This document shows, piece by piece, positions 37,376 to 61,747 of a stretch of 64,000 nt of DNA. The stretch comes from Heteronotia binoei (Eukaryota), in the NCBI RefSeq assembly GCF_032191835.1, contig NC_083237.1, positions 24,552,001 through 24,616,000 on the forward strand, given 5' to 3'. Made by a program: the position numbers and the translations under genes. Within the stretch, counting starts at the first letter, position 1; each line of letters begins with the position of its first letter. The notes beneath the pieces were generated by a model. It searched no databases. It had not been told where the DNA came from and saw only the letters and a program-made list of their open reading frames with translations.

Positions 37376-37411
37376 GTATCAAGCAGGACTCATGTCTCCA
37401 TGCATACCTGG

Positions 37412-38860: not shown

Positions 38861-40311
38861 GCAGCAGTATTCTCAGCCATTCCCTGCAGCTGCTGTGGGG
38901 AACCCAGAGCCAACTTATCAAAAACCCTGCAGGATTCCTTAGTTAGGAGAAACCATGTGGGCTGACTAGTAGTTTTCTCTAGTCAGCTTTCATACTAAAA
39001 CGACTAAGTGTAAAAATGCTGCTTCTGTAGTTGCTAAGTGCTAAAAGGCATACAGGCACCATCACAGTGGCCTCAACATTCAGATCTTCTTCATGGTCTC
39101 TGTGCATCACACCTATGGGACACAGTGCACCTGCACTGACCCTGATTGGTACTTAACAACCCAAAGGATCTTCACGCCCAGATTCCAGTGGTGAGTGCAA
39201 AACCCCCACCATGCATGCTCATTGGAGTGGGTGCGAACATCCAGCCAGTTCTCTTCTGACTGCCACGCTGATCAGTCATTCTCACTCCAGTCAGTATTTT
39301 TGTTAAATTTCCCTTTTTCCTTAGCCATTTCTTTTCTGTTTCTTATGACATGTATGCTATCATTTTCTAACTGGAGGCACTGAGACTCTCCTGTGACAAT
39401 AGTTGCACCGGACATGCTTCATCCTTCCTGGATCATGACCTGTTTGAAAAAGTGGTTTATTTCTTCCCCACAGCCTGAAGCAAAAGCTAGTGATGCATTA
39501 CCCATTTCTGACCTGTCTTTGCCTATACAGCCTGGCTTTGAAAGCCTGCATTGTCATCACCCTTTATGAGTAGCTTATCCACCACTCTTAGAAAGCATCT
39601 GGATCCAGTTTGTGTGAAACCAAAAAGCAGACAAAAGAAATTAATAGCTTTATTGAGAAGCTATCCCACAAAATAATAAATTCTGAGAGGGTGCCAGAGG
39701 CCCTACCCTTCTTGAGGCAAACAAAACAGCAACCCTGAGAAACCAACAGCGAGTCAGGAGCCTGGCCAAGCATCACACCAGAGCTCCAGGGAGGACTTGG
39801 TTAACTCCACAGCACCAGGAACTAGCCAATTCCTGCTCCCCGCCAACAGCAAGGCAACACAGCAGGGCAAAGCAACTCCCCCTTGAGGTTATGCGGAGTA
39901 ATGCTGCAGGGTCAAGTCGACGCCACATTTCAGCTCTCCACTCCAGTTTAGTTCCAGATTCACCAGTCTTGCCCCTCTATCCCAACCCGTGGAATCAAAA
40001 GTGCATCAGAATCACAGTCAAAAATAGGAGCCAGAAGGGAACACAAGAGTTCTTGCTCTAATGCCCTGCTTGTTCTCCTCCAGATACCTCCGGAATCCTG
40101 GTTCTCAGCCTCCTTTGCTGCAACTTATTTAGGCACGTTTGCTTCTTTCCCAGCTTGAACTAGACCTCCTTCTGCTCTGCTGGAAGATGTGGGCTTCCTA
40201 ACTCTCAGCTCCTAACCACCTAAATGATAACAGATGAGATAGGCGACATGGGAGCAGGGAGCAAAAGTATCAAGATTGGATGGGGGTGGCATCTGTATAT
40301 GGGCAGGGAAC

Positions 40312-40317
40312 TTTATT
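40312..40317 (-). terminator. Poly(A) signal AATAAA of the JIP3/4-like gene
   Basis: tttatt on + strand about 285 nt after the stop. Confidence 0.55.
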
Positions 40318-40602
40318 GCACAATGATGCATTGTTCCAGTTGGAAGGCACTGCAGATGGTCAAGAAGGTGGTAGGAAGAACAACCAGCTGCAGCTGCCCT
40401 CTCTGAGCATTTTCAGGAAACAGATCCTGATGTGCGCATGGCGTTTTCACATCACCGGCCCTGTAGACCTTAGACGCTTAATTCCCAAACGAAGAGGCTG
40501 GGAGAGCGAGGGCACCACCACCACCCAGCAGCTGTGCCATTTCATCCTAACTGGGAGCCCAGGACACGACACCTGAGCAGTGTCATGCCGATCACTGCAG
40601 CC

Positions 40603-40703
40603 TTAGGCCTGCACCTGCCAGACAATCAGGTGACTCCGCTCAGCACGACGTAAGCGCGGGTTGGGGAGAAGCAGGTCACCGTAGCGTTCATCAGTGTCAT
40701 CTC
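40603..40703 (-). CDS. JIP3/4-like last exon
   Basis: [32 protein letters not shown]. Confidence 0.93.
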
Positions 40704-43700
40704 CTGGGATTGTGGAGAAACGGGAGAGAAGAGGTGAGCTGTGGTGCTGAAATAACCAAGTAGGATGTCCTCTTCATGCAAGCATCTTGGATCCCGTTCC
40801 CACCCCCAGACTTCTAGGGAACGTGCTCACCTATCCGGAGATTAATGTAGCCTTCCCCTCCACTTAGCACCAAAGTGCAAGGCTTCCTTGGCCTCTCTTT
40901 GTGGGACTCCTTGGGATTCTCCAAAGGGGACAGATCTTTACATCCTAAAATGAACACGGCAGACAGACAGCTTACAAAAAAAAAATACCCCTAGATGAGG
41001 GCTGAAGGCATTCCAAGATTCTACAATCATGTCGCATAGTTGGATGCTGGGCCCAGAATCCCACACCCTGATAGTTTCAGCATTCAGTTCTTTTATGTGA
41101 AGCATTATCTCAGAGTTGGGAACAGAGGGCTTATTCTCCCACCCCCAAGCTTCCAGGTGGGCTGCTGTCTAACAAATTTCTAGTCTTCAAAAATTTCAGA
41201 GACAAGACTTGGATTGTGGACGATGGCTGGCGAAGTCTCAACAGAAAGGAAGAAAGCTGAATTATACTGCTGGAGAGGAAAAGGGAGCTGGGTCTCAAAT
41301 CCTGCACAATCAGGATTGTACACAATCAGAAAGCAAGCGAAGATGGGTCAGAGAATCCAGTGTTTCTTGGTGCAGAGTAAACAAGTCCAGCTTCAGCCCT
41401 GATTTACAGCGAAGTCCTAAAAGAACACCTTCCTGGAAGTAAGCTCCTTTGAAAAGATCTGCGTAGACCTGCTTAGCATTGCTCCAATGATCACCTGGCT
41501 GGGAGCATTTCCTGCTCTGCTGAACCTCGGTTTGCAGTCCATGGCTGCTTCATACAACAAAATAATTTTCACACAGGTCCTGTCCAAAGTCCCCACCCCA
41601 CCCACTGGACCACTCCTCCCTTCCACATACCCAAACCAGCTCCCAGTTTCTCACTGCTCGTACAACTGGGTGGCTTTTCCCCAAACAACCTCGTACTCTT
41701 GCATCATCCCTTGCTTCAACCAACTTCAGACCATCTCATTTTCTCATATCTGACCCAAGAGACCAAGACAGAGAGAGAGCTGCAATACTCCCTCTAAGCT
41801 GTGGCGTCTTGTGAGCAAAAATTCTACTTTGTGAGCTACTGGCACTAAAGTTGTGAACTACTGCATAAATTAATTTGCTCTGGGGCCATGCCTCCTGAGC
41901 TAAGGCAAAAATGTGTGAACTGGAGGCTAAAGAACTGAGCTAGCTCACACTAACTCAGATTAGATTAAACGCTGGAGAGCTGAACACCAAAATACTAAAA
42001 TGCCATGAGTTCACCCAAATAAACAGGCTCTCTTCCATCAAAAATGAAGCTCTCCCACTTTTTCGTCTCACATTTTAATTCATTCAGCTCCATTCCTCTC
42101 CCAAAGAATTCATGGACAATTTATCCCCCTTTTGCCACCTGGTTACCTGGGACAGAAACAAAGAAGCGAACAGCATCACGGTGCCCATGATAGCTGATCT
42201 GGGCTTGCTCCATGGCACAGTAAGGGATCACAGCTGGCATGGGAGATTCCGAGCTTCCTGCAGCTTCTACAGAGAAAGAGAAATCAGAAGTTCATGGAAA
42301 CAGCCACCAGAGGGCAGTGCTATGCCTGTCATCCTCTGAAAGCTCCACAGGGTGACCCATCCTCTTATTTTACACGTGCTTACCAGAGATGAAGGGCAAA
42401 GAGATGATGGGACCTCCGGACATGCCGACCCACAGCCGCTTCCCAAAAGTACCAAGTGCTGTGATGTTCAGGGCTAAACTAAGGCTGTTGGGCCCTAAAA
42501 TGGAAGGAGAAAGAAAGGGCCATGAATGAGCTTCAGGCATGGCCATTCAAAACCAAAGCCAACACCAGGTATTAACACACTCAAGTTATTTCTGTCCAGG
42601 AGGCAACACCCTCAATAGCATTGCTGGGAGCAGCAGAATCTCGAAGAATTATCTTGGGCTCTAAGTGGCTCAGTGTCTTGCCCTTAGAGAAGGGCAGCCA
42701 GTCCTGGAATTTTTACCAGAAGTGGGCCAATTGCTCAGAGGTGGTGATCCCAAATTTAGTCCCCAGCACTTTCAGTTAAAGGATCTTCAATCACAGCTAG
42801 CGGGAAAGATTTTTCTGCCCGAGACCCTGGTGAGTCATTGCCAGACAGAGCAGACAATGCTGAACTCAATGCACACCTCCCCCCCTACACATACAGGGTT
42901 TTTAAAAAAAATCTTTCTGCAGTTAGGACAGGGAAGAGCGATTCAGGACTGAGCGGGGACTTTGAAACCAAGTCCCCCTATTCCAAGACCAATTTTCTCT
43001 GACCAGTACACTATCCTTATTCATCCCTCTGCTAGTCACAGGGCAGCAGAGGTCTGCCTGAATGTCCCCCACCCCATGTCAAAATTCTTATTCTGCCACC
43101 CCGTTGACTTCTGAGTGTTGCCTGCATTCTTGACCTCACTCTGAGGGTTGGTACGAACCAAGCTCTGCCGCGGCTGCTCACCAAGCATGCGGCTGATATA
43201 AGGCCCCAACTCCACTTCCTGCAAGGGCTGCCCGGTCTCCGCGTGAAGCAAGCGCAGAGTGGAGTCCAGCCGAACAGAGACCCATATGCCATTGCCAGCA
43301 GCCACCATATGCCGCACTTGGCTTTCAGGATGCGAAGTCACCTCAAAGTACCGCTGGGAGAAGAAGGGCAATGCAAGTTATAACAGGCAGCCGATTCACA
43401 GAATTCCTCCCTCCACCACCACTATCAGTCTGGTTATTGGACCTTAGATCTTATGGCTGAAGAACTGGTCTTTTTACACTCTGATAAACTACTCCTTGGG
43501 ATCTCCCAATTTCACTACAAATGGCTGACACAAATTTACTGCTTAGTCCCTGTCTCCTACATTTAAGTATCTTGTTCTGATATCAGTTGAGTGGATCATA
43601 CAAGATCCAGCCATCTCAAACAGCCATATAAGGAATTTAAATCTCCCACTTCGGCTCCACAAGTGCCCCATCTCCCACAAGTCCCTGAGATGACCTGGAT

Positions 43701-46700
43701 ACGAGCAGTGCGTGGATCCAGCACGTAGATTCGATTCCCGTATCCGCACCACAGCCGATCCAGGACAGGGATGGCACAACGAATGGAGCGCCGTGGCCTT
43801 CCCAAATCAACCAGGCGTGGAGAACGCAGGTCCCACTTCCGGGCTGAGGGAAAACAGGATTAGATGGAGGACCTGCAGCATGGAAGGCAGGAGGGGGAAG
43901 AATCAGAGGAGCAAAATTTACCTGGATTCCGATGGAAAATGGCTACAGATCCATCCCCTAGTGTAGCTGCGACACGACCCTGGAAGTGGCTGAAATGGAA
44001 ATGATCAAGATAGATAAGGTTCGTATGGCACCACTGAACAGCTTGTGCAAGGGATACACAGTGGGGGCCCTCCCAGGCCTTTCAAGAAAGTAGTGGAGGG
44101 TCACAGACTCACACGATACAGTGAATTGCATCCTTTAGCTGGGCTTTTCCCTGACAGCGCCGCCAGTCTCTCTCAGCACAGTGAACACAGATGCTACAAG
44201 AAAAGAGAAAAGGCAGCCAATTAAACCTTCCTGGCTTAACCCCTGAACACCGCACATCTTTGCTGTTTTCAGTGGCAACCATAATTTCAATAGTTTCCGC
44301 AAGTTTCCTAGCATGCTGGGCATGCTGAGTCTAAATAAATATGGCGGTATCCCTGGATACCTCCATGTGGTGGGTTAGCGTACTGACTGCAGGCTGTCAG
44401 GCGCGAAAGAGAAAGGTACAATGAGGTGTCGGTGGGTGAAGATGGGAAGATGCAGCAGCTGGCTGGAGAACTGCAGTGTGTCTGACGGTCTCCACTGAGA
44501 AATGGGCTTCCAGAGCAAAGCCTTCCCCCATGTCACTTCTTCCCCTGCAACCCTTGCCAATTACCATCCCTCCTGAGTTCCCAGCCACACGGTGGGTTCC
44601 GTGCCAGCCGCCTCAATTTCCAGTGTTTCATCGTCACTGTCAGATCCAGGTGCCAGGGGGTCTTCGAGGATCTCTGGCTCCAGCTCAGGGCTCTCCCTGC
44701 CAGGCACTGTAAGGCCTATGGCGACAAGAAGAAACAGCAACAAATTCCAGTCACACCCCCCATCCAGAAATCCCAGAAGGCCCCAAATGGTACCGCTCCA
44801 ATCCAAACTGTATCATGAGCAAGTGATTCTCAACCCCCCCCAACCCACTTTCCAGCCATTGTAGGGGTTTTTTTTAAAGAAGCTTAAAAACAGAAATTGT
44901 GTGTAACAGATATTTATTTCAGTACTAAAATTCATTAGTATTTTGGTACTTAATAGTTCAGAAAACATTTTCTGCAAGTGCTCAAAGCGCTTCACATTTG
45001 AGATCTCATAATGATAACCATAAAATGGGGGAGCGCTATGCAGTTAAACATTTCAGTGAACTACATTTTCAAATACTTACAGTCAGTTGTAGACATTTAT
45101 AGACCAAAGCTATTAGCAATAAATATAAGGACAAATGGATGCAAGTGCATTACAGTCATTGCAGCAGCTACAGACAGGTGCTAAAACCCCACCTGCTAGT
45201 CAGTGGTTCTGGAACACCCACCTCTAGACACCCCGTGGAGAATGGGAGTCTAGAGATGAGGCAGAGACTGAGCGAGGGTGTGCCTGGCCTGAGGCAGAGG
45301 CAAGGATTTGAACTCCCAGTTTTCTGCCACCAGATTGTGCAACAATAAAACCACAAACAGGCAACCACACATTATTAATGTTCACAATTCTGGCACACAA
45401 TGCAGCAATGGCCATTGATTTAGATAACTCAGACCAGGGGTATCAAACTCATTTGTTATGATGGCCGGATTTGACATAAATGAGACCTTGTCAGGCTGGG
45501 CCATGTGTGTTGTAAAATGTAATGCCAGGTAGCAAAGATAGAAACTTTATTAAGGACACAGGCAAACACAAAGATTTTTTTAAAACTTAAAACATGCTTG
45601 AAACATTTAGCACTCTTGCAATATTTTGTTTATTTAACAGTCTCTGATAACTGACACCTCTTTTTTTGAAATATTGCATAAAAACTGGGAGACAATGCCT
45701 ATGTTGTAACAATCTTGAGAGTGCTGTTCAGGTTTTATCTGTGAGTTGCAAAGTTACTTTTTATTTATTGACATTACAGAAACCTCATGGTCAATGCTCT
45801 GAGCCATTACCAGGAGGGAAACAGGAAATGGCTGGACATTGTGAGCCTTTGTACACAAGTTACTTCATGTGCTGGTCAAGAACATGTGAAGATACCATGA
45901 CACAGACTGAGAGCTATGTGTTTGTCTACCAAAATATAGTCTTCCTCAGAGAAATAACTACAACTTCTATGTGACGGTGCAAGAAGAGACAGCAAAGTAT
46001 GGTGGTCAGTATCAGCCTACTATCTAGGAAGTCTAAGTTCAGATTCCTCAATCTACAAAGGAATTGTGCTGGGTGAACTTTAGACACTCAGCCTAATCCA
46101 CCTAACTGGCTTGTTATTTCTCATCTAAATAGTTCACATTGCTTTCCTACTGAGAAAGACTAGATCGTGAAGGATATTTGTCTCTCTCCTTCTCCGAAAA
46201 GCTCATCCCTTAAATAAAACTTTGTTGATCCTAAAGGAACATTGTATCTCTCCCATGTGACTGAAAGAACTGGGCAAAGTAAGCTCTCTTCCCCTCCCTT
46301 ACCCTGTTCCTCCTCAGGGGATGGGGTGGGGGGGAGCCTCAGCAATGGAGAGCCTTGGCTCAGTAGCTCTGCTTTGTGATTGAGAAACCCTGGCAAAACA
46401 AGCTCTTGCTCTTTCCCTCCCTCCATAAGAAAGGAGCCTCAGCCAATGGAGAGAAGAGAACCTTTGCTCTGTAGCTCCTGTGCTTGATAGAGTTTGGCAA
46501 AGCAAGCTGCAATGAAGAAGGAAGCAAAAGAGGTAGAAGGAAGCAGACAGCAGCCAGTTGCTTGCAGGATGAATAGGCGCCCTATGGGGGCCGAGTGCTG
46601 CCCACAGGCTGCATGTTTGACTTAGACAAATTGAAAGATGAGGAGCGGTCTATTAATGCCAATTACATGTGACAGTTAAATGGAACAGCCATGGCTCAGT

Positions 46701-49700
46701 GGTAAGAGTATCTGCTTGGAGTACAGAATGTCTCAGGTTCAATCCCTGGAATCTCCAGTTAAAAGCACCTGGTGGTAAGTGTTGTGAAAGAATTGTGCCT
46801 TAGAACCTGGAGAGCCGCTGCCAGTACTGACCTTGATAAAGGTGTGATATTTATATTGAGCCCTGTGGTGCAGAGTGGTAAAGCTGCAGTACTGCAGTCA
46901 AACACTCTGCTCACAACCTGAGTTCAATCCTGGCGGAAGCTGGGTCAGGTAGCCAGCTCCAGGTTGACTCAGCCTTCCATCCTTCCAAGGTCGGTAAAAT
47001 GAGTAGCCAGCTTGCTGAAGGGAAAGTGTAGATGACTGGGGAAGGCAATGGCAAACCACCTCATAAAAAAAAAGTCTGCTGTGAAAACGTGAAAGCAGTG
47101 TCGCTCCAGAGTTGGAAACGACTGGTGCTTGCACAGGGGACTACCTTTACCTTTATTTATACTGATTGAAAAACCAGTGGTCTTAACTCGATATAAGGCA
47201 GCTTCATGGAACCTCCATGTTCACTGGCAGTGTATTTCTAGCACCAGTGTTGGCCAAGTTGGGAGGGGGGATAGAAGACAACCATGAGCTATTGCTTTCA
47301 TGTTCTGCTTGGGGGTTTCTCCAGAGGCATCTGGTTGGCCATTGTAGGAACAGAATGCTGAAGCAGATGGACCTTTGGTCCAACCCAGCAGGGATTTTCC
47401 TTCACAATAGAGATATTCAGTGTACAGACAACCCACACAATTGTTTATGGTACCATTTGTGCAAATCTACAGTATTTTATCTGAACAGCTGTATTTATTA
47501 AAAAAAGAATGAAGTATTTGTCAATTATCTATAAAACATGAAGACACTTAGAAATCTTTTCCCACCTACCCTCTGAGAACTACACAATCTCACCCCCTCC
47601 CTCAGTTCCTGATTCGCACATGCCCTTCCTTTCTTCCTCCCAGAGTTCCGCTCCCTCACACTTACCAGGTACGCATGCAAGAGAGAGGATGTGAATTCCA
47701 GGTAACACAAAGTGTTCCAGTAGCTGGTTTGGGTTCTGAGCATCCAAAAGCATCACTTCGCTTGCTGAGTGGGTCCCTGAGGCCACCCACAGCCGAGAGT
47801 TGCCTCCAAGGCATTGATCAGGCATACCCTATGGGAAGTGGGGAGAAGAAAGAGAGGCATCAGCAAGACACTGAGCCTCCCCACCCACCCACACTTGTTT
47901 TCAGGATCCCATTACCACTCACATTTATCCTTTCTAAATGGCCTGGCAGCAGCCAGAATAAGCCCAACTGTAGCCACAGTCAATACTCCCTCTAAGCTGA
48001 GGAGTCTTGTGAGCAAAAATTCTACTTCATGAGCTACTGGCATTAAAGTTGTGAGCTACTGCTTAAATTAGTTGGCTCTGGGGCCATTTTTCCTGAGCTG
48101 AGACAAAAATGTGTGAGCCGGAAGCTACAAAACTGAGCTAGCTCACACTCAGCTTAGAGGGAACACTGGCCACAATACAAGATAAAATTGTAGAACTTAA
48201 ACAAAAGAAATCTAATGCATACATTGAATGATTTTATCTGTTCTTAAGTTATCCTGTAATAAATACAGGTATTTTTGATAGTTTTATGTTGTTTTACAAT
48301 TATTGTTTTTAGGAATTGGCCATGAGATTTCTATTTATTTAACCTTCCAGGTTCTTAATGCAACTGTTTGGGTTCAATTTTACTTCTCCTCCTTTCTCTT
48401 CTTTCAGCAGCCGGAATAGCCCTGACCAGCCAGGTCTTGGAAGCTAAGCAGGGCTGGTCATGGTCTGTTCTTGAATGGGAGACCAGGACTGCTATGCAGA
48501 GGCAGGCAATGGCACACCCCTTCTGATCCTCTCTTGCTTGGAAAACCCCATGAGGGGCTGCCACATTTCGGCTGTGACTTGACAGCTCAGTGCTTAATAT
48601 TATTATTTATAAATAGCTTGGCAAAGAAAGTTCTGCAAACTAAAAAAGACTTTGGTCTTTCAGAACAGAGAGGACCTGCTGAGTGTTCTGCTCAAGAGAC
48701 CCTCAAACAGCAACTGCTGCTGGTTTCTCAAAGTACTTACAGTCTCTGGTGTCCCTTGAGGTTCCAGCCCGACAGATGCTGCAGCGCACCACAGCTGCAG
48801 TGGGAGAGATACAAGCGTTACCTGGCGATCATTACTGAGAGGAACAGCACAGGAATTGCAGCCTCCTGGGCTCACCTGGAGCCAGAAGACTTTGCGACAA
48901 TAAATTCCTGGATTTTGTACAAGCGTGCACAAGTGTGGCATGAGGGAACAGCCAGCATGTCATAAGAAATTAAACATTTCTGGGAGCCTGACACATATAC
49001 ATATCTGCATAGATGGTGCCCAGTTTGTCTCTGGGTGATTTACTGCTCAGGTGTCTCCTTTCAGTCAGCTTTCATTGAGCCTGGAAAGCCCAGTTCTTTT
49101 TAAAGCTGCTTTCTCACCTTGGTACTAGGGTCCTTCTGATCCAGCATCCGTAACTGCACAAGCACAGGCACGTCAGCAGCGCATGAAGGTGGATCGTGGC
49201 CCTGAAGTGGAATAAACAGCTATGTTTTTCACACATGGAAACTCCCCTAGCAGAGTTATATGTTCCTAACCAAGGATGGATCCATTTCCTCGGATAAAGG
49301 AAAATGCTGAATGTTTCAAATTACTGTACTATTGGGCATCTCACAGGGTATGTTCACATATTATATGGACATCATATTTCCATGAGGAAAAGCTGCCTGT
49401 ACAAAGACAAGACCTATGAGTGTACACAGAGCTGCAAGCCAGCAGTTTTATTACACAGATCTATTGTCAGTGCTGAATATAATCAGTCCACAAGACAGAG
49501 ACCCTCTGCATATGAGACCTACAGATGCCTGAGATACAGGTGAGTGCAGAACATTCACCTGAAGTGCAGGTGGCTGGCTCCACCCATGGATCTGCGCCCG
49601 ACCATGCTCCTGCCAGATGTGTGAGTGAATATCACGGTACAGCTCACGCCGCTTCTGTTGCGGGGAAGAGTCGCCCCTGCAGATACAAATGACAGACAAT

Positions 49701-52700
49701 AGTGGGCAGCAGAGAGACTCCAGCCACCACACTATATATGGCTCCACTGCCCTCAGCGGTATTAACCTAAGTGCAGCATCTCAGCCATGCAAGGGTCATT
49801 CAAGGACAAAATAAGATGGACAAAGCTTGGAAGGCCACAGTTCTTTATCCTCATGGCACCTTCTGCTTTTGCTGGCAGGTCTAAATAAAGTCTGCCGTGA
49901 AAACGTGAAAGCAACGTCACCCCAGAGCTGGAAACGACTGGTGCTTGTACAGGGGACTACCTTTACCCTTTTTATACGAAGAATCCAAAATCTGAACCTG
50001 GGAAAGTAGAAATTCTACCAACAGTATATATTGTGCAGATTAAGAAGGAGGTGCTTTATCCTGCATTTTTTGAGTGTCAGTAGATTTGCACATATGCACT
50101 GTTCCAGAGAAGACAGAACCATGAAGTCCATGTGACTATTTGCCCCACCCCCAGAAGGAGCCACAGAACTTACTCAGTGGGCGAGGTTGCTCGTGGGATG
50201 TACCTCAAAGCTGGAGACACCTGCCCCCCATTTCGTCCCAATTCATTATAGATGCTGGGGCTAGATCGGGCCCGCCCTCCCAGCTGGGGGGATGCAGGCA
50301 TTTTCTCTGGAGAGTCTGAGGGACTAAATAAGCGATCAAAGCTGCAAGAGGAAATCCAGTATGGTTACTTAAAAACTGGATGGGGAAGGGAATGTCATCA
50401 AAAGTCAATTCTAAAAATAAAGCCAGATACAATGTGAAGGGAAGCACCATTTCTACATCATGAGGGTTAACAGTGAAAGAGCTTTCTGGCTATTCATAAT
50501 CAAAGAGGGATGGAAGTGGAGTCAAGTCACAGCTGACTTATGGTAGACCTTGTAGGGTTTTCAAGGCAAGAGATGCACAGAGGTGGTTGGCCATTGGATG
50601 CCTCTGTATAGCAACCTTGCCCTTCCTATGTTGTCTCCCATCCAAGATACTAGCCAGGGCCAACCCTGCATAGGTTTCTAGATCTAGTGAGATCAAGCTA
50701 TCCTGGACCATCCATGTCAGGGCATATCTAGAACATAAATTGTACGGTAAACTTAAAAGTCTGCCATGAAAATGATGTGATGCGACATCATCCCAGAGTT
50801 GAAAAACTACTGGTGCTTGCACAGGGGACTACCTTTACCTTTTTAAACTTAAAGACAACACTTACATTTTCCAGAAAGATGATTTTTTCATCTGAACTGC
50901 CTGTTCTTCCCGCGAAGCCCTGCAAAGAGAGAAATCGTCCTTCAGCAGCTGCCCTGGCACAGCACAGAGACTTGAAGTATCTTTTCTTCATGGTTTTAAG
51001 AAGCAGCAGCAATTGGATTTGTACTTCACTCAGAGTGGCTTACAGTCTCCTTCCCTTCCTCTCCCCACAACAAAGGAAACTAGTCCTCAAACTGAGACAC
51101 TTCAGAGAGAGAGGGATGCCATTGCAGCAGATTCACTGATGCCCTCTCTTTCAGCCTCTTGCATGCAGAGCTGGTACAGTCCAGCAGTCCTACACATGGG
51201 CATTGCGCCAAGGGTGAATTCTCACCTCAGCCACAAACTCACCAGGGAAGTTTAGGAAGTTCTCTCTCCCCGTCTCCCACCATACACATTTGACCAAGTG
51301 TCTTGTTCCTTCTGTGAGCCTGAGAGGGGAAAAGCTCCACTATGCCTGGTAGCAAAGGCTGGCCTTCCAGATGGCAAGGTGGTGCCATGACACCAGGGGC
51401 CTGATGGTAAGGACAAGGACAGAGCCCATAGGAGCTCCCTTTTTCCTTTTACGCCCTTCCTGCCAATCGAGCACTGTGCCCATCAACCTCAACACGTCTG
51501 ACCTGAGGAGCTCAGTGCGTCTAACAGCTTCTTGCAACTCCATCAGCCTTTCCTTGTAGAGGTTGCGTTCCATCACCACACGCGCCATCTCAGCCCGGGT
51601 GAACCGCTGAGGCCTGGATGGGCCCCCTTCAGCCTGTAGAGGAAAAAAAAGGATCCTTTCTCAACACACAACCTGCTCACAAGAAGATTGGGGTTCTTCC
51701 TCCCATTTTCGTCTTGCCTTGACCCTCAAAGCCATGCCCAGACAACTGGTCTTCCACAGAACCCAACAGCCCACCAAACTCTCCAAACACCAGCAGAAAG
51801 TACTCCTCCAGTTACCTCCCCATCATCACTTGGACGCTTTGTTTCCTCCAACTCCTGTCGGATCCTGGAATGAGAAAGGTAATGCAAGTAGCTGAAATAT
51901 GAGCTCACATTATTACTATAAAAAAAGTTGTTGGAAAAATCACTGAAGGTTGATGACCCAGGAAGAGAGAATGTTGTCTTTCCATGTTAAGTACACATGG
52001 CAGGCCTTTTCAAATAATTTAAGTAGAGAACACCAACATCATATGATTGCCATTTGGCACACACTGGAAATTGTTGACTCACAGTCTAAACAATAGATCA
52101 GAAACAGCCATGACAAACCAGAACTTGAAAAGCATTCTGGGGGTTCTTAAACACATCCCTAACGCATTCTGAACAAGTATTTTTCGGTATTTTTATTCAG
52201 AAGAATACGCTAATGTAGAAAGACCAACATTAGTTATTTTGAACATTTATATGCCACCTCTTCAAAGGTCTGCTCAAGGCAGCTCGCTCATCAATGCAAA
52301 AGTTCAAATAATAAAATCATTCAAAATAAGAATCTGTACATTCCAAAAGCGTAAAAGCCCGTAAATTGCATGAAGGATTAGCAAGATTTCGGCAGAAGTA
52401 TCCAAACCCACAGTCTCTCTCTCTTTTGAACTTCAGCTGACTCTCCCAAAGAACAGCACCTAAAACTGTCCTGTGCTGAACCAGACCCTGGGTCCCTTCA
52501 AGGTCCATCTTGTCAACTCAGACTGGCAGCGGCTCTCCAGGGTCTCAGGCAGAGGTCTATTCACATCACTTCCAGCCTGGTCCCTTTAAACTGGAGTTGC
52601 CTTTGATGGAACCCGGGACTTTCTGCGTGCAAAGCTGAGGCTCCACCACTGAGCCACTGCCCTGCCCCAACTAAGATGCGCTAGCGGCTCTACACCTGCA

Positions 52701-55700
52701 GCAAAATTAGTTGGAAGAGCTCAAAGGTCATAGACTGGACTGCACCACTTCAGGCTGCCAGAGGAGGGAGTGGAAATAATATTTTTGAACGATCTATGAA
52801 AAAAATTTCCCTAGAAAACTAGCACAAGAAGGAGGAACCTGGGCTGCAAACTTTCTCCTTGGTGGGTTGGCTTTTTTTATTTGTGTGAAGCTTTCACACT
52901 AAGAACCATTCCAAGGCGGCAATACCCACCTGTAGTCTGTAGTAGTACAGTCCACTCAGTCCTATAAAGATTCTCTCAGCTCCTGTTGCAGGTGTAGACC
53001 GGGCCTTACTCCAAAGATACCTGTCATCCAACAGACCCTAGTGTGCCATACATGTCTCTGACACCTTAAGAACATTATCTGTAGGTACCACCTTTATCTG
53101 CAGGGGAAAGTGCCCAGGTCCCTCTCAAACTTCAGAGAGATCATTCAATGATCCAGTTTGCACATTGCTTTACCCAGCCACCTTCTAGCATGGGACCAGT
53201 TCTTCCTGTTTCACTGGCAGGATGACTAAAAAGCTAGGACTCAAACAAGCCTGCAATACTAAGTCCACTGGGAGCCAAAGTCCAACTCCTTGCCTCCTGG
53301 ACAACATTGGCTCTGGTAAAGCAAGACGCCAGAGGCAAATCCTGACAGGCACTTTGCGGCAGGGGGAGTGGTTCCCAGGTCATACCGATTCAGCTCCAGC
53401 TCAGCCTCCTTCAGCTGTGCTTGGCAGCGGCTCAGGGTGCCAGCCACTGCATCACGCTCCAACCTCAGTGACTCGCGCTCCTCACCAAGCTCCTCCACGC
53501 GGGCAATCAGATGGCGGCGGGCAGTATCCAGAGTGATCCTGGAGACAGGAGGGCAAGAGATACAGCTTTAATCTGGGGCCTTCCATGAAGAGATTTTCAG
53601 GATGGTAGCCATAGTAGAAGAACAAGATTTGAGTCCAGTAGAGACCAACAGATTTTGGGGATTTAAGCTTTCATCAGACAGGTATACTACAAAAATCTTG
53701 TTGGTCTATAAAGCACAGGGCTATATCTAGGGAGAAGCAGAGGCCCCTTGCCCCAGGCATCGCCAGAGGGGGCACCAAATTGGGTATGGAGTCCATTCTA
53801 TTCTATGGGCCCATAAAATAGAATAAGCCCATAAGGGGGCATCATTTTTTAATTTTGCACCCCCCCTCCCTCAAAAACCATGTAGATCTGGTCCTGATAA
53901 AGCATTATGTAGCATATATACAAATGAGGCAGGTCTGGGTTAAGGTTCATCTAGTAATCTGCCAAGAAAAGCAGAATACAGAGAAAGAATCAAGAGGTGG
54001 TTGAGTGGACTTCAGGCAGCAGGCAGGATATACCATTTTTTTATCCCCCCCCCCCCAAAAAAAAAAGATTTAAAAAGTCTCTACAAGTAAAAGAAACAAC
54101 TAGTTCATCAGTGGAAAAAAGGCCCAGTTCAGCCCACTCCCAGCTGCATCGATTTTCTTCTTGCAGCTTGCATTTTATTCAGTGGAATTAAAATGTGCAC
54201 TCCCCTGCAATCTGGTGGTACATCTCGTTCCCGCATATACAGGCCAGGCCTTGGTTGAGGTCATAAGCAAACCTTTCCCTCCCAGGAACCCAAATTTCCT
54301 TCACTTTAGGGTGGGATAAAGAGGGTCCTCCTCCTCACCGTGCCTCTTGTAGTTGCATGTTTTCCGTCATTAGGGTTTCTAAGACATCTCCTGCAATGAT
54401 TGTAAAAACATGGATATTACTGAAGTGTGCTGTAGGTTCAAACACTAATTCCTCACAGGGGCTCTGGGAGCCCAGGTGTTCCAGGAGTAGCACCAGTTGG
54501 TTCATAACATAAGCTGAGTTCTCTGGAAGAGGGGGAATTGGGAGGTCCAGCAGAAAGGACAAAGCAGATACGCTTACCCTGCAGATCAGCACCGTCGTCC
54601 ATATCGCTGAGAATTTCTGGGCTGAGGCCCGAGACCTCGGCGAAAAGTGAGACCGTGTTGCGCTCGAGGGTGGTACTCAGGGGGCTGAGAGACAGACAGA
54701 CAGACAAATAGACAGAGTACCCACCCACCTTCATCCTGGGAACACACACCCACAGGTGACACCACAGTAGACAGAAACCAGTGTGAACATGAACTGGGTC
54801 TGTGAGGAAGGTGGGGGGCATTAAGGTGTCCTTCACAAAAAACATCACCTTTCTGGCACTCTCCTCCCTCCTGTGACTACAGTGCTTTCAAAACAACAGC
54901 AGCAGAAAGGTATGAGGGAAGAAAAGTTTCCTGTCTGGCCATCAGACTCATTGGTTGTTTCCTCCAACACAGGAAATATGACAGCTAAAAGGCAAATGTG
55001 GCTCAAGTGCAAACACTAACAAGGTAAAGGGAAAAGTGGGGGCGGGGGGTGAAGGGAGCAGCACAGCCACACTGAGGATGAAGGGGCAGGGAGGAAGAGC
55101 CTAGCAGTTGCCTTCCACCAGTGGAGGCCAGCACAGTCTGTGTTTGGGCACTGGCCAAACAGGATTACCCTATCCATGTGCTTTCTGCTTAGACCAGGAA
55201 GTTTAGGAAGCAGACACGTCCCTTTTACCTGCTTGGTGGCTGTGGGGCAGGTGCCAGTTCTGGAGTAGAGCTGAGAAGTTCGTCCAGGTCAAAGCGCTCC
55301 TCTTGGGCAGGAGAAGCTGAAGGAAAACAAAAGGGAGTGCCAGTGTTATTTTTATATTTAGCCCATCTATAATAGCAGCATAACATATTTATATGGTGCC
55401 ATCAACAGGCTTTGAAAGCCAAACCAGATGCGGAGGGGATGACAAGTCCCTGCCCCCAAAGGAGTTTCTTATCTGCATTTTGACAGAGGAGACAACAAAG
55501 GAAAACAGAGTGGGGTGGGGGGAGACATACTGGATAGATTTATTAAATGAGTGAAACATCATCCAGAACAATAACATTCCGAAGCCAGCACTGCATTGAC
55601 TTACTAGGGTCTCAATCCAAATTTACTTGGGAGTAGGTCCTACTGAGCCCTGACCTGGATAGCTCTGGCTAGTCCAATCTCAGAAGCTAGGCAGGGCCAG

Positions 55701-58700
55701 CCTTGGCTAGTATCTGGATGGGAGACATTCAAGGAGTACCAGCGTTGTGATGCGGAAGCAGGCCATGACAAACCGCCTCTGAGCATCTCTTGCCTTGAGA
55801 ACCCTGCAGGGTTGCCATAAGTCGGCTGTGATTTGACAGCAGCAACAACAAATACCTTACTGAATTTGTGGGACTCAGGATCTGATTTTGTGTCACTTAA
55901 GATTCAAGCCCAGTCTTCTCCCTATGGTGCTAACTTCTTCTACATTTTAAAAATGCAATCCCTTTCTGCCATCCAAAGAGATACGGCTACCACTTCAAGA
56001 TGTTAACACTCACATTCTGCGTGGCATATGTAAATGCATCCCTTCCAGGCTGGGAGAGCTACCCTTTCTCACTTCTACCCATATAGTTAAGCCTAGTGAT
56101 AGAGGTCACACTTGATATATAGGTGTCTGAGACTGTGTCTCCTACTTACAAGGGTCTCAGGATGGGGAAAGACCGCTTTTGATGCGCATTAACCAAAGGA
56201 ATATGTACTAGACCAGGTGGGCAAATGGCCTGGCTTGGCATAAAGAGGAAAAGGTCACTGAGTCCACTCCATACCATCTTTCTCCAGCTGCACCATCTCT
56301 TGGGCCAAAGGACAGCCGTTCCTTCCTGCTTCTTTCTGGGGAGTCTTCTCTGAGCAGGGTGGGTCTTGAATCTCACCAGGCTCCTGAAATATGAAAGAAA
56401 CCACTGAAGGGGATAAACTGTGGGGTTGCCTTCTCAACCAACCACTCCTTTCTTGACAAACTCTCCAATGACCCCATCACCAAGAGCTGCTTACCTCTAG
56501 GAGACGTGGTGATTTGGGCGATCCAGGGTCTGAAGTGCTTGGCAGAAACTGGGGGGCCTTCCAGATGGGCGGGGGCTTCAACCTAACCATGTGAAAAAAG
56601 ATAAATTTTGACAGCCCTCTTCCTGCCTCCAACTGTTTAGCTGTCCCAGAAACAACCAGAACCCTTAAACTCCTCTGCAGGTCCAAACACACCACTCTTC
56701 TCTGCTGCATTTGTCTCATAGGCCCATGTCACTATCCATTCCCACCAGGCTGACTGTAGAGCAGCTTTGCTTTGTTCCTGTCTTTCCTGCTCCACTTCAT
56801 CAAACCCTGTCTACTATTTGCCAAGAAGGCAACCCAGAGCAACCACATGGCAGTCTCAGCCACTTCTGCACTGGAAGAGGTGGTGAAACACCAGGCCCCA
56901 AAGTTGCTAAGCAACCACAATGGGCTTCTCCCCATTCTCCTGAAATGGATCCTGATTGAATGATAGCTGCAGCAGGGACTGAAGAAGCTGGATGCTCAGC
57001 ATCTGGACCATAGAGCACCCCCCACAGCCTCAGCACTATGGAGAAATATCCCATCTAATTCAAAATCGGGGCCTCTACCTAGGAATTCACAGAACAGTGA
57101 CACCCCCCCCCCAGGACTTTGCCTCTCCTGACCTTTTTGTCTCTGCAGAGGGAGATCCAATTTGGCTTGTGCCAGCCAGTGCTATCCGCTGTGCTTTCAG
57201 TTCCCTGTAACTTTGCATCATCTGTAAAACACAGAGTATGAGGTGAAAATGTAGGGAGGGTGAGGAAAGAAAAGAACAGGCCGGTCTAGGCCGCAACTGA
57301 CTGCAGGTACCTTGGTGTGGGTCTGATTGAGAGCGGAGAGCTCCTTCAAGAGCAAAGACTTCTGTTCTTCCAGGCTGGCCACTGTGAAGAGAACACCAAC
57401 AAAAGGACACTGGGTGCATTTAGGCAGGCACTATCCACACAAACATCAGGTTTAAAACTAGCATTAATGGGCTCTTCACAGTCTCAGCTGAATCCTGTAG
57501 ACCTGCAATGCTATCCTAAGCATGCTTGGCTGGAAATTACATCTTTCTGAGTTCAGTGTGACTTTTCCATGCATCCAATTGCAACCAAAATAGTGAATTT
57601 CAACAGAATTCAGACGAGACTAATTTTTGCTGGATTGTCCCTACACCTTCCTGATGGAAGTCAGTTCACTGAGTTCAGAGGGGCCTGTTTCTATGGGATT
57701 GCACGGAAACTGACAGGCTCAGGCAAACACAGACAATGTATTCACGCTAGCAAATTTTTACAGAAGCACTGGAATTCCCTTGCTATGGTCAAGGTCATAA
57801 AGTTCTGAAGATAACAGTGTTAACGCACTAGGAGCCTTGAAAGGACTGCGTAACTAGCACACCACTTGCAAGCAAAGAGAACTGAATCAAACACCTTTTC
57901 CAAAAGCAGGTTTGTCGTAGCCCTTGCAAAGGAGAATGGAATGGCTATTCCCAGGCCAAAAGCGAGAGAAGGAAAGAAACTGGTGCTGCTATGAATGCAG
58001 GTGGGTGATGGTGGTATGTGTATACACACAGACATACAAAACACCAACAGGGCTGACAGCTATCCAAGTTTGTGACGAACCTAAGAAAGCATGCTAGAAA
58101 GGTTATGCTGCTCCCTCTTATACCGACACCCTACAGTCTTGGGAAACCAGATATACTGGCCCAGCAGAGCGCTGGAAGAGGTGCAGGACTGGGCACGCGT
58201 GTTAGTGGGAAGGGCATAGGCGGGCACTGAGCCACCTTGCAAGTAAAAGAGGCCCCAGCTGGAAGATCACTGTTTGAATCCATTCAGTTCTGCATTTGGA
58301 CAGGATGCCCGTCTCCACTGCTGGTACAGTACACATGTTACCAAGTTTGGAAAGGCTGGTCCATTCACATACCCTGATCAGCATAGCTCCGTGCTTTGCC
58401 CTCCAGGACACGGCTTTGCCCCTCCAGCCGAGTCATGGTGGTGGCGTTTGCCTTGCGCTCCTGCTCCATCACATCCTCCAGTTCCATGAACCGCTGCAAG
58501 GAAGGGAACCCAAAGGTCCAGGCAGTTGCTCCCACCTCCGAATGCTCATCCTTGAAGCTCAAGGCTGTGTTTTTAGGGTTCCCAGGTGGTTCCCCATCCA
58601 CAGCTTTACCAAGGAGGGCTGTGTCATGTGCCTCCAAGGACATTAGCACAATTCTACATGTCCCCACATCACATGCTCCCCGATTCCTTGCACCGATAGG

Positions 58701-59479
58701 CAGCCTTTGAGCCCAGGCACTCATCACTCCTTCTCAGCTCCCTCTTTCCGCCTTCTACACTAGCTGTACTGTCACCTGGCCCCCACCCCAGATCCCAATG
58801 GACTGTGGCTTTTTAATCACCCCAACATCACTCTCAGCCTTGACCTGGATGGCCCAGGCTAGCCTGATCTCATCAGATCTTAGAAGCAAGGCAGGATCAG
58901 CCCTGGTTAGTACTTGGGTGGGAGACCACCAAGGAAGCTCATGGTTGCCTCACAGAGGCAGGCCACGGCAAACCACCTCTTCATCTCTTAGCTTGAAAAC
59001 CACCTGGTTGCCATGAATCATCTGCCACTTGTTTTACCACCGCTGGGCCCACCAGGGAGTCCTGGTTGCCAGCCTCCAGGCCAGGGTCCGCAGCCCTTCC
59101 GTCGCCGGCCCCCGGGAGACTGGAGTCAAATCTCTGCACCGGGCAGCGCTACAGGTGGACGGCGGGCCACACTTACCTCCTCGGCCCGCTTGCGGCCGGC
59201 TCGCTCCCGCTCGTATTGCTCCAGCAGGCGCAGCCGGTCATCGCGCAGCCGTTCCAGGGACTGGTCCCGCTCCCGCACCTGCCCGCAAGCCCTCTGCAGC
59301 GACTCCAGGACAGAGACGAGCTGCGGCAGGAGCCCCGACACCGCCCCGGGCCCGTGGGCCCCGACCAGCCGCTCCAGCTCCCCGTACAGGCCGCCGGCCA
59401 TGGCAGACACCAGTTCCTCGTAAGGCGCGGCGGAGCCCACATCGCCATCGCCCCCAAAGGTCTCCTCGGGGTCATCCAT
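40603..59479 (-). CDS. JIP3/JIP4 (MAPK8IP3/SPAG9)-family motor-adaptor protein, divergent paralogue; 27 coding exons, 1019 aa
   Basis: 27 GT-AG exons sum to 3060 nt with no internal stop. RH1 ([26 protein letters not shown]), LZI, LZII ([20 protein letters not shown]), RH2 ([29 protein letters not shown]) and the C-terminal propeller ([74 protein letters not shown]) all match JIP3/4 hallmarks. Confidence 0.93.
40831..40944 (-). CDS. JIP3/4-like exon 26
   Basis: [15 protein letters not shown]. Confidence 0.92.
41780..41955 (+). mobile_element. hAT (Tip100-like) MITE
   Basis: caatactccctctaagctg start; near-identical to 47981 copy. Confidence 0.7.
42147..42266 (-). CDS. JIP3/4-like exon 25
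   Basis: [27 protein letters not shown]. Confidence 0.95.
42384..42494 (-). CDS. JIP3/4-like exon 24
   Basis: [26 protein letters not shown]. Confidence 0.92.
43182..43353 (-). CDS. JIP3/4-like exon 23
   Basis: [39 protein letters not shown]. Confidence 0.95.
43695..43843 (-). CDS. JIP3/4-like exon 22
   Basis: [30 protein letters not shown]. Confidence 0.93.
43922..43989 (-). CDS. JIP3/4-like exon 21
   Basis: [22 protein letters not shown]. Confidence 0.9.
44113..44193 (-). CDS. JIP3/4-like exon 20
   Basis: [27 protein letters not shown]. Confidence 0.88.
44565..44706 (-). CDS. JIP3/4-like exon 19
   Basis: Acidic linker then [10 protein letters not shown]. Confidence 0.88.
45435..46622 (+). 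mobile_element. hAT (Charlie-like) element, longer internal version
   Basis: caggggtatcaaactcatttg left end; gctgcatgtttgac right end; family internal blocks at both ends. Confidence 0.6.
46685..46845 (+). mobile_element. tRNA-derived SINE
   Basis: tggctcagtggtaagag A box; ggttcaatccctgg B box. Confidence 0.7.
46858..47154 (+). mobile_element. Full-length Sauria SINE
   Basis: gagccctgtggtgcagagtggtaaagctgcag head to gggactacctttaccttt tail; TSD atttatatt/atttatact. Confidence 0.92.
47666..47828 (-). CDS. JIP3/4-like exon 18
   Basis: [31 protein letters not shown]. Confidence 0.92.
47981..48168 (+). mobile_element. hAT (Tip100-like) MITE
   Basis: caatactccctctaagctg / cagcttagagggaacactg TIRs; TSD gccacagt/gccacaat. 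Confidence 0.8.
48400..48590 (+). mobile_element. 5S rRNA-headed SINE
   Basis: ggaagctaagcagggctgg..cttgaatgggagacc + Sauria-like tail. Confidence 0.75.
48741..48794 (-). CDS. JIP3/4-like exon 17
   Basis: [18 protein letters not shown]; GTAAGT donor. Confidence 0.85.
49118..49201 (-). CDS. JIP3/4-like exon 16
   Basis: [18 protein letters not shown], matching JIP PVPVYLRPLDEKD..K. Confidence 0.9.
49559..49676 (-). CDS. JIP3/4-like exon 15
   Basis: [28 protein letters not shown], matching JIP KREQYRQV..GRVQAxGWSLP. Confidence 0.9.
49885..49972 (+). mobile_element. Sauria SINE 3' fragment
   Basis: aagtctgccgtgaaaacg..gggactacctttacc. Confidence 0.85.
50174..50341 (-). CDS. JIP3/4-like exon 14
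   Basis: [13 protein letters not shown]..; AG/GTAAGT. Confidence 0.82.
50535..50845. mobile_element. 5S-headed SINE (minus, about 50535-50725) plus Sauria SINE tail (plus, about 50755-50845)
   Basis: gtctcccatccaagatact; gcacaggggactacctttacc. Confidence 0.7.
50866..50919 (-). CDS. JIP3/4-like exon 13
   Basis: [17 protein letters not shown], matching JIP ASRE..KKxSSIWQ. Confidence 0.88.
51503..51633 (-). CDS. JIP3/4-like exon 12 (RH2 domain)
   Basis: [35 protein letters not shown]. Confidence 0.95.
51816..51864 (-). CDS. JIP3/4-like exon 11
   Basis: [16 protein letters not shown]; phase 2/0. Confidence 0.8.
52480..52665 (-). mobile_element. tRNA-derived SINE
   Basis: gaacccgggactttctgcgtgcaaag..ccactgagcca (reverse tRNA head). 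Confidence 0.7.
53386..53538 (-). CDS. JIP3/4-like exon 10 (LZII)
   Basis: [34 protein letters not shown]. Confidence 0.9.
53716..53895. mobile_element. hAT MITE
   Basis: cagggctatatcta / tagatctggtcctg termini. Confidence 0.5.
54339..54390 (-). CDS. JIP3/4-like exon 9 (LZII start)
   Basis: [18 protein letters not shown]; AG/GT. Confidence 0.88.
54578..54684 (-). CDS. JIP3/4-like exon 8
   Basis: [24 protein letters not shown], matching JIP NTDSL..DVDEGADL. Confidence 0.9.
55229..55316 (-). CDS. JIP3/4-like exon 7
   Basis: [13 protein letters not shown], matching the JIP4 IIESTPEL motif. Confidence 0.85.
55645..55845 (+). mobile_element. 5S rRNA-headed SINE
   Basis: cagaagctaggcagggcc..agtatctggatgggagac + ttgccataagtcggctgtg tail. 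Confidence 0.75.
56275..56383 (-). CDS. JIP3/4-like exon 6
   Basis: [18 protein letters not shown]; phase 0/1. Confidence 0.7.
56495..56582 (-). CDS. JIP3/4-like exon 5
   Basis: [29 protein letters not shown]; phase 2/0, GTAAGC donor. Confidence 0.75.
57133..57221 (-). CDS. JIP3/4-like exon 4
   Basis: [30 protein letters not shown]; AG/GT. Confidence 0.8.
57311..57381 (-). CDS. JIP3/4-like exon 3
   Basis: [24 protein letters not shown]; AG/GT. Confidence 0.9.
58373..58493 (-). CDS. JIP3/4-like exon 2
   Basis: [25 protein letters not shown]; AG/GT. Confidence 0.92.
58835..59035 (+). mobile_element. 5S rRNA-headed SINE in JIP3/4-like intron 1
   Basis: cctgatctcatcagatcttagaagcaaggcaggatcagccctggttagtacttgggtgggagacc closely follows 5S. 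Confidence 0.8.
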
Positions 59480-60130
59480 CCTCGGGGCCGCCGCTCTAAC
59501 CCCTGCGCCGTCCAGTCTCTCCCCGCAGATCACTTCTTGGCTGCTTAGCCGGCTGGCCCCAACGACCCCCGCGTGCTCCCCTCGAGCCTCTTGCGCTGCC
59601 TCCGCTGTCCTCGCCTTTAACTACTTCCTGCCCTCTAAGGAGGCCGGGAGCTTGACTTCTCCTGCCTCAGCACGCATCCGAGTCTTGGTCTCCGCAGACG
59701 ATTTCACCCTCGGCCGGGTTCCTTTGCTTTCTAAGCGCCGCCGGACAACACCCCACCCCCCGGGCTCTAACCACTAGACACCACTCCCCTCTCGCAGCCC
59801 TTCGTAAATGCAAGGTCTCCCTCTCCTCCCGGCATCTTTCGCTTCCAGGCTGTAACCACAAAGCTCTTTCTGAAAGGATCCCGGATCCTTGGAACCCGCA
59901 CCGTCTACCTAGAAAAATCCTCAGGCTGGGACTCTACCCACTAAGCCCGGCTCTCGCCCTCTCTTCCCCCAGATCCTAACTTCATGTCACTTTGCAAGTG
60001 GAAAGATAGGCGGAGCCGGAGCCTCCAAGGACAGCCAATGGCGCATGAAGAAAGTGTCAAGAGTAACCAATTGCGCGTTGCGATGCGCCTGGATGGCCAA
60101 TAGTGCGTGGAGGAAGGAGGCTTCCTCCAA
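59050..60130. promoter_or_regulatory. CpG island/promoter of the JIP3/4-like gene with three CCAAT boxes
   Basis: Very high GC and CpG density over exon 1 and upstream; CCAAT at 60035, 60067 and 60097; GC box taggcggag near 60007. Confidence 0.8.
59177..59479 (-). CDS. JIP3/4-like exon 1 (RH1 domain)
   Basis: ATG 59479; GAG|GTAAGT donor; 303 nt. Confidence 0.93.
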
Positions 60131-61014: not shown

Positions 61015-61290
61015 TAGCACAGAGTGGTAAAGCTGCAGTATGCAATCTGAGCTCTCTGCTCACAACCTGATTTGATCCTGGCTGAAGCTGTGTACAGGTA
61101 GCCAGCTCAAGGTTGACTCAGCCTTCCATCCTTTCAAGGTCAGTAAAATGAGTACCCAGCTTGCTGGGGGGAAAGTGTAGATGACTGGGGAAGGCAATGT
61201 CAAACTACCCCATAAAAAAATTCTGCTGTGAAAATGTCATCCCAGAGTCATAAACAACTGGTTACTTGCACAGCTGACTTTTACTTTTTA
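61015..61290 (+). mobile_element. Sauria SINE
   Basis: gcacagagtggtaaagctgcag head; diagnostic core and tail. Confidence 0.88.
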
Positions 61291-61334
61291 ATGAGATAAG
61301 AATCCTATGTCCCTTTGCAGTCCTAGGGGGACTC

Positions 61335-61745: not shown

Positions 61746-61747
61746 TT

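Follow-up and report, generated by a model that had tools for sequence, protein, structure and literature searches.

A probable third paralogue of the JIP3 and JIP4 transport adaptors in the gecko Heteronotia binoei and other jawed vertebrates

The adaptor proteins JIP3 (MAPK8IP3; Sunday driver, UNC-16) and JIP4 (SPAG9) are central to the transport of lysosomes, endosomes and autophagosomes, to LRRK2 and phospho-Rab biology and, in the case of MAPK8IP3, to neurodevelopmental disease. To our knowledge, the field treats vertebrates as having these two members. A published phylogeny of JIP3 and JIP4 reports only these two groups in vertebrates, with no mention of a third. Here we describe a JIP-type gene on the minus strand of a 64,000-nucleotide stretch of the Heteronotia binoei genome (RefSeq assembly GCF_032191835.1, contig NC_083237.1, positions 24,552,001 to 24,616,000 of the forward strand), which we refer to in its full length as the window. 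Our findings make it highly probable that this gene is a third gnathostome paralogue of the JIP3/JIP4 (MAPK8IP3/SPAG9) family, and we hold with good, if somewhat lower, confidence that this history together with an adaptor mechanism of the kind set out below is the best explanation overall. The gene is intact, expressed, correctly spliced and under purifying selection. Its sequence is not new to the databases; it represents an unnamed and unstudied third member of the family.

Open reading frames between 59.5 and 40.6 kb on the minus strand encode recognisable JIP3/JIP4 peptides. Two full-length relatives from an exhaustive HMMER search served as guides for the gene model, exons were mapped by tblastn, and the junctions were set by scoring every in-frame GT/AG pair. 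The resulting model extends from an ATG at 59479 to a stop codon ending at 40603 and comprises 27 coding exons, separated throughout by GT..AG introns, that encode a protein of 1022 aa (Table 1). An earlier description made from the letters of the window alone (hereafter the sequence-only reading) had given exactly these coordinates and this exon number, together with canonical splice sites, which are present as AG/GT at every one of the 27 exons, and a CpG-island promoter, which the base composition bears out (Table 1). Its protein of 1019 aa is three residues too short, probably through alternative choices of neighbouring acceptors. Among database proteins the nearest is the orthologue of Gekko kuhli, with 92.5% identity over 1021 aa, and that of Eublepharis macularius comes second at 88.8%. 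When the annotated proteins of these two geckos are threaded through their own loci, both give 27 exons with lengths equal to those in the window, the sole difference being an exon 1 that is one codon shorter. There is no difference in kind between these annotated orthologues and the gene described here, and all of them fall in one clade with support of 100/100.

Transcription was followed over positions 40000-44800, which hold exons 19-27, in two runs of one study and two raw-read runs of a second. At each of the eight introns that separate exons 19 to 27, RNA contigs and raw reads from the two studies show splicing exactly at the modelled junctions, and the skipped sequence is bounded by CT..AC when read on the plus strand, equivalent to GT..AG on the minus. 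Of the words sampled from a 4.5-kb stretch, about 30% of which is made up of exons and untranslated region (UTR), 17-24% occur in three runs of one study. The RNA contigs measure 1117 nt and 3140 nt; the longer is about 99% identical to the window and extends 334 nt past position 40000, through the first AATAAA at 40317. The 3' UTR is therefore at least about 940 nt long, and the AATAAA at 39654 is probably the poly(A) signal used. A poly(A) signal had been claimed in the sequence-only reading and one is present, but the transcript reads past the first of them; at about 0.95 kb, the 3' UTR is roughly three times the length implied by that nearest signal. The same reading had left expression as a point on which it could fall, and spliced RNA from two studies across exons 19-27 removes this doubt. 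Selection was estimated from the ratio of nonsynonymous to synonymous substitution (dN/dS), for which comparison of the three geckos yields 0.13-0.15 with NG86 and 0.20-0.22 with YN00. RH1 (0.03-0.10) and RH2 (0.02-0.10) have the smallest ratios, and the linker between LZI and LZII has the largest (up to 0.43).

These data bear on the proposal that the gene arose by recent, lineage-specific duplication or is a copy in decay that is not expressed. The proposal would account for the high divergence from JIP3 and JIP4, the shorter protein and the loss of two canonical motifs, but it is contradicted by the intact reading frame with 27 exons conserved in three geckos, by dN/dS values of 0.13-0.22, by spliced RNA in two studies and by orthologues that range from stingray to snakes. 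We regard it as refuted.

A search with a turtle orthologue recovers proteins of about 1000-1080 aa from turtles, squamates, alligator, salamanders, frogs, caecilians and lungfish, and in the same search canonical JIP4 proteins of about 1300 aa rank far lower in score. Cluster look-ups and a second search add alligator gar, spotted gar, sturgeon, stingray and about 100 teleost entries of about 990 aa. Within this protein database search no bird or mammal is found among the matches to the third clade, though it does return many JIP4 entries from both groups. In two maximum-likelihood trees computed under LG+C20, JIP3 forms a clade with support of 100/100, JIP4 one with 100/99, and the proteins recovered here a third with 100/100 on a stem of about 1.0; the window protein lies inside this third clade and outside the other two. 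The third clade groups with JIP4 at 95/89 in one tree and 90/89 in the other, and the lamprey, Ciona and Nematostella sequences fall outside all three clades. Taken at face value, the topology suggests that the third lineage split from JIP4 after the tunicate split and before the divergence of cartilaginous and bony fishes. This breadth agrees with the age proposed in the sequence-only reading, with a clade spanning stingray, gar, sturgeon, teleosts, lungfish, amphibians, turtles, alligator and squamates. That reading had also proposed retention in squamates and loss in mammals; the absence from mammals holds in the protein sets, but retention is nearly gnathostome-wide instead of restricted to squamates, and the bird protein sets lack a member as well. 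Losses thus appear to have occurred in both mammals and birds.

The window protein is only 39% identical to JIP4 and 38.5% to JIP3, as heavily substituted as had been claimed, while sheep JIP4 and a sea-anemone homologue share 51%. Kimura distances for the same species pairs are 2.6-2.9 times as large in the third clade as in JIP4; a rate about ninefold faster, read from tree branch lengths, was dropped in favour of this comparison. Such divergence raises the question of whether the gene is simply a fast-evolving reptile orthologue of SPAG9/JIP4 or MAPK8IP3/JIP3. RefSeq does give some copies the plain names JIP4 or JIP3 (alligator, Pogona and many teleosts), and the JIP3 rows in our trees are all mammalian. 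However, the third clade is separate from both the JIP4 and JIP3 clades at 100/100, and Carettochelys, Bufo bufo and Anabas testudineus each carry a canonical JIP4 of about 1300 aa beside a third-clade protein. This coexistence indicates that the gene is neither a fast SPAG9 or MAPK8IP3 orthologue nor a recent duplicate. Zebrafish, too, has mapk8ip3 and spag9a/b. The genomic neighbours described below are also unlike those of SPAG9 or MAPK8IP3. We consider the orthologue explanation largely refuted and very improbable, and the proposal of a third paralogue, as first made in the sequence-only reading, stands.

Conserved gene order supports the third paralogue as well. In the window, a GARIN exon (Pfam 7.3e-17) and a COX6B exon (2e-07) share the strand of the JIP-type gene, which lies upstream of both. 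On its other side, the upstream flank is collinear with that of G. kuhli until about 0.7 kb short of TMEM238, such that TMEM238 should lie about 0.7 kb past the window end as the upstream neighbour in geckos. TMEM238 adjoins the gene in two geckos, gar and stickleback, and in the two fishes it is followed by CCDC106 and a U2AF2-like RRM gene; in the geckos GARIN is likewise a neighbour. In the turtle Carettochelys, the orthologue is adjoined by IL11, directly upstream, and by an isochorismatase-domain gene. IL11 was not detected between the gene and the window end (59500-64000) by tblastx with the turtle IL11 region or by Pfam on open reading frames at 60-64 kb. Compared between lineages, TMEM238 lies downstream of the gene in the ray-finned fishes (gar and stickleback) and upstream in geckos, which implies a local inversion or rearrangement within the conserved block. 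Overall, the neighbours TMEM238, IL11, CCDC106, GARIN and COX6B differ from those of SPAG9 or MAPK8IP3, and we take them to correspond to human 19q13.42. Human 19q13.42 is paralogous to the 16p (MAPK8IP3) and 17q (SPAG9) regions, as seen for example in PRKCG/PRKCA/PRKCB and EPN1/EPN3. The inferred timing of the split accords with an origin in the genome duplications of early vertebrates (2R).

The gene has been predicted repeatedly without being recognised as a group. Its database names are automatic and inconsistent: RefSeq labels range from 'JIP4-like' and 'JIP3-like' to, in some cases, unqualified JIP4 or JIP3, and some Ensembl-derived entries carry the zebrafish name si:dkey-17m8.1. The sequence-only reading, which could not check whether databases already list the gene as JIP4-like, is answered in this respect: they do, under these automatic names. 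Within the literature outside supplementary tables and subscription journals, we found no paper that treats the third group as a family, no study of si:dkey-17m8.1 and none that deals with SPAG9/MAPK8IP3 as ohnologues, the only mentions being one entry each in gene lists from Xenopus and from turtle gonad; the description of the gene as uncharacterised is in keeping with this result.

The encoded protein retains the architecture of JIP3 and JIP4 in compact form. Whole-protein Pfam analysis, folding and dimer prediction were run on the 92.5%-identical G. kuhli orthologue in place of the window protein. Pfam identifies RH1 and WD40_2 on the window exons themselves, with exon 1 also matching the human JIP3 RH1 structure (Table 1), and RH1, JIP_LZII, WD40_2 and Beta-prop_LRRK2 in that order on the G. 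kuhli protein, in agreement with the claimed succession of RH1, LZI, LZII, RH2 and a WD40 propeller. JIP_LZII scores 1.6e-18 (67 bits) and WD40_2 8.7e-44 on the orthologue; the window exon that holds half of the LZII domain reaches 22.6 bits, below the cut-off. After RH1, the LZI coiled coil aligns ungapped over 86 aa with 47-48% identity to JIP3/JIP4, and RH2 is 68-70% identical. The protein is about 300 aa shorter than JIP3 and JIP4, with a linker between LZI and LZII of 112 aa versus 176-186 aa and a propeller of 422 aa versus 611-621 aa, its loops being trimmed. An AlphaFold2 (AF2) model of the G. kuhli C-terminal propeller has a predicted TM score (pTM) of 0.80, and Foldseek aligns residues 2-446 of 447 to predicted JIP3/JIP4 propellers at TM 0.77-0.80, versus TM 0.55-0.58 for solved LRRK2 WD40 domains; the full propeller fold of JIP4 thus appears to be kept. 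The LZII-RH2 segment is predicted to form a parallel, in-register homodimer with a score of 0.51 versus 0.00 for the best control, though the model may here be reproducing solved coiled coils of JIP3/JIP4 and RILP that it has memorised. Of 30 proteins solved as pairs of one chain, 21 attain this mark, and of 23 solved as single chains, none does; between runs, at least 76% of contacts agree, with pLDDT of 74 or more. RH1 and RH2 domains are shared with RILP, RILPL1 and RILPL2, but the RILP proteins are short and lack LZII and the propeller, whereas the gene described here encodes a long adaptor of the JIP3/JIP4 type.

Residues at known partner sites were compared over 50 third-clade proteins. 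The substitutions V60Q in JIP3 and V55Q in JIP4 abolish binding to the dynein light intermediate chain (DLIC), and P56F in RILP lowers affinity. The DLIC determinants corresponding to human JIP3 P57 and V60 are Pro in 50/50 and Val in 49/50 third-clade proteins, the window protein included, which suggests that this contact may be preserved as in JIP3 and JIP4. In RILPL2, an Arg-Phe pair of the X-cap and a Lys of RH2 contact phospho-Rab8a, and the positions equivalent to R132, F133 and K149 retain these residues in 47, 50 and 50 of the 50 sequences, respectively, pointing to a putative Rab-binding face; the Rab-contact Arg and Lys are likewise shared with JIP4. The second leucine zipper presents a different picture. 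Its interface with KLC2 has been mapped on mouse JIP3 residues 433-450 with 13 contacts, which make up a bilaterian signature for contact with KLC-TPR1 and ARF6. JIP4 and the lamprey protein are essentially unchanged at these KLC/ARF6 positions (lamprey has Glu for D450), whereas the window protein has four identical, three conservative and six changed, and the third clade bears its own signature, with V441A and K442R in 50/50, N439D in 45/50 and position 444 never Asp. The JNK docking motif RKERPxSLxxFPL, which serves JNK/p38 in JIP4 and corresponds to the RKERPTSLNVFPL docking site of JIP3, is absent from the window protein at the expected site after LZI; it is deleted in the turtles and ray-finned fishes of the third clade and degenerate in the amphibians and lungfish.

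Based on these comparisons, we propose a mechanism in which the protein would act as a parallel coiled-coil dimer. In this mechanism, the N-terminal RH1 would engage the DLIC, and possibly the kinesin heavy-chain tail, while RH2 would bind a Rab GTPase on an organelle and the compact C-terminal beta-propeller would bind cargo or regulators. With the JNK docking motif lost and the KLC/ARF6 contact surface of LZII apparently replaced by a different surface conserved in the clade, the protein probably does not serve as a JNK scaffold and probably does not undergo the KLC/ARF6 switching of JIP3 and JIP4. In short, the proposed dimer would couple dynein, and perhaps kinesin heavy chain, to membranes marked by a Rab, with a new LZII partner surface and no role in JNK scaffolding; we judge the case for and against this proposal to be evenly balanced. 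We infer all binding partners and the cellular role, next to gene structure, expression, selection, phylogeny, synteny and residue conservation, which are results.

Two other mechanisms were weighed. In the first, with the gene history unchanged, the protein would still be JIP3/JIP4-like, a bidirectional kinesin-1/dynein adaptor whose LZII continues to bind KLC and ARF6. The hydrophobic core of the LZII site (L438, L445 and I446) and the conservative changes K435R, K442R and D450E remain, Pfam still identifies JIP_LZII on the G. kuhli orthologue at the value given above, and conservation extends to the part of RH1 by which JIP3 binds the KHC tail. However, the six changed contacts include V441A, D444H and N439D, which together represent two hydrogen-bond partners and part of the hydrophobic patch, and we consider this mechanism doubtful though deserving of attention. 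In the second, the leucine zippers would serve mainly for heterodimerisation with JIP3 or JIP4, and the protein would modulate these partners instead of carrying cargo itself. The heptad leucines of LZI and LZII are conserved with JIP3/JIP4 and in-register pairing of the coiled coil is predicted, but a pure modulator would have no need of its own RH1, RH2 and propeller, all of which are under strong constraint; we think this unlikely.

Several points weigh against the explanation we favour. The absence from birds and mammals comes from protein sets, not from genome searches. The homologue search for JIP3 was seeded with the Pongo protein and gave almost only primate isoforms, all of them mammalian, and for this reason the trees hold no non-mammalian JIP3. 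The position of the third clade as sister to JIP4 has only moderate support and its stem is long, and stingray and sturgeon are represented in it by truncated models with long branches. With regard to mechanism, the RH2 X-cap equivalent of R130 is Pro in squamates, this gene included; the conserved DLIC and phospho-Rab residues are known as necessary in JIP3, JIP4 and RILPL2, not as sufficient; and the homodimer pass may stem from the model memory mentioned above.

Table 1. Features of the JIP-type gene in the window (two geckos: G. kuhli and E. macularius; o/e, observed/expected).
Feature	Position	Strand	Evidence
CpG island over promoter, 5' end and exon 1	59000..60000	-	GC 0.65-0.71, CpG o/e 0.76-0.88
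Exon 1, aa 1-101, start codon and RH1	59177..59479	-	Pfam RH1 1.6e-16; PDB 8pr2 (human JIP3 RH1) 5.9e-14; donor gag/GTAAGT
Exon 2, LZI coiled coil	58373..58493	-	spliced alignment to orthologues, AG/GT; matching exon in two geckos
Exon 3, LZI	57311..57381	-	spliced model; matching exon in two geckos
Exon 4, LZI end and linker start	57133..57221	-	spliced model; matching exon in two geckos
Exon 5, linker, position of non-conserved JNK docking motif	56495..56582	-	spliced model; two geckos; site table
Exon 6, linker	56275..56383	-	spliced model; matching exon in two geckos
Exon 7, linker, STPEL motif	55229..55316	-	spliced model; two geckos; alignment
Exon 8, conserved pre-LZII box	54578..54684	-	spliced model; two geckos; alignment
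Exon 9, LZII start	54339..54390	-	spliced model; matching exon in two geckos
Exon 10, LZII including remodelled KLC/ARF6 surface	53386..53538	-	Pfam JIP_LZII partial match; site table
Exon 11	51816..51864	-	spliced model; matching exon in two geckos
Exon 12, RH2 domain	51503..51633	-	alignment; Rab-contact residues kept
Exon 13	50866..50919	-	spliced model; matching exon in two geckos
Exon 14	50174..50341	-	spliced model; matching exon in two geckos
Exon 15, conserved pre-propeller box	49559..49676	-	spliced model; two geckos; alignment
Exon 16	49118..49201	-	spliced model; matching exon in two geckos
Exon 17	48741..48794	-	spliced model; matching exon in two geckos
Exon 18, propeller	47666..47828	-	spliced model; matching exon in two geckos
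Exon 19, propeller	44565..44715	-	spliced model; exon 19-20 junction in RNA contigs
Exon 20	44113..44193	-	RNA joints 44193/44565, 43989/44113
Exon 21	43922..43989	-	RNA joints
Exon 22	43695..43843	-	RNA joints 43843/43922, 43353/43695
Exon 23, propeller	43182..43353	-	Pfam WD40_2 3.7e-13; RNA joints
Exon 24	42384..42494	-	RNA joints
Exon 25	42147..42266	-	RNA joints
Exon 26	40831..40944	-	RNA joints, contigs and raw reads
Exon 27, stop codon end 40603	40603..40703	-	spliced model; RNA joint 40702/40830 read with cut +1
3' UTR, at least about 940 nt, probable end after AATAAA at 39654	39649..40602	-	RNA contig; AATAAA positions

Elsewhere in the window, the GARIN Rab2-binding exon occupies 33820-34101, and downstream of it on the minus strand are two long, Ser/Pro-rich open exons at 18783-20201 (472 aa) and 27298-28821 (507 aa). 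The former contains a block of about 80 aa in two near-identical copies and the latter carries RPISREMSVKSKPSGKQGTSAAPSRLQSPGRT twice; Pfam finds no domain in either, and they are presumably the repetitive tail of a GARIN5B-like gene. The COX6B-family exon lies at 7763-8044 on the minus strand, consistent with COX6B2 as the next gene beyond GARIN, and a run of 140 N at 11103-11242 marks an assembly gap or masked stretch. Within the JIP-type gene, intron 25 harbours an interspersed repeat of about 200-320 bp (41771-42092), with a second copy of 85% identity in intron 17 (47981-48169) and related pieces in the G. kuhli flank. The summed RNA depth over the intron-25 repeat is 35,000-42,000, versus about 10 for the exons of the gene, with many loose ends. 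It has no match in Rfam and is probably an abundant, transcribed element resembling short interspersed nuclear elements (SINE-like).

Our interest in this gene is tempered by the fact that ohnologues lost in mammals are common and that the gene is already predicted in many annotations. Within these bounds, the third member represents a natural variant of the JIP3/JIP4 design in which the predicted determinants for the dynein light intermediate chain and for Rab are kept, while the KLC/ARF6 surface is changed and JNK docking is lost. Its most far-reaching interpretation, that most jawed vertebrates, mammals and birds excepted, possess a third JIP adaptor uncoupled from KLC, ARF6 and JNK and dedicated to connecting dynein with Rab (possibly phospho-Rab) on organelles through an LZII partner of its own, is tentative, and we would not be surprised to see it fail. 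The presence of the third member in the main non-mammalian models, as si:dkey-17m8.1 in zebrafish and LOC100493724 in Xenopus, and not in mouse or human, matters for the reading of zebrafish and Xenopus knockouts. If such an uncoupled adaptor does exist, jip3 and spag9 phenotypes in zebrafish and Xenopus may be buffered or modified by a gene that is absent from mouse and human.

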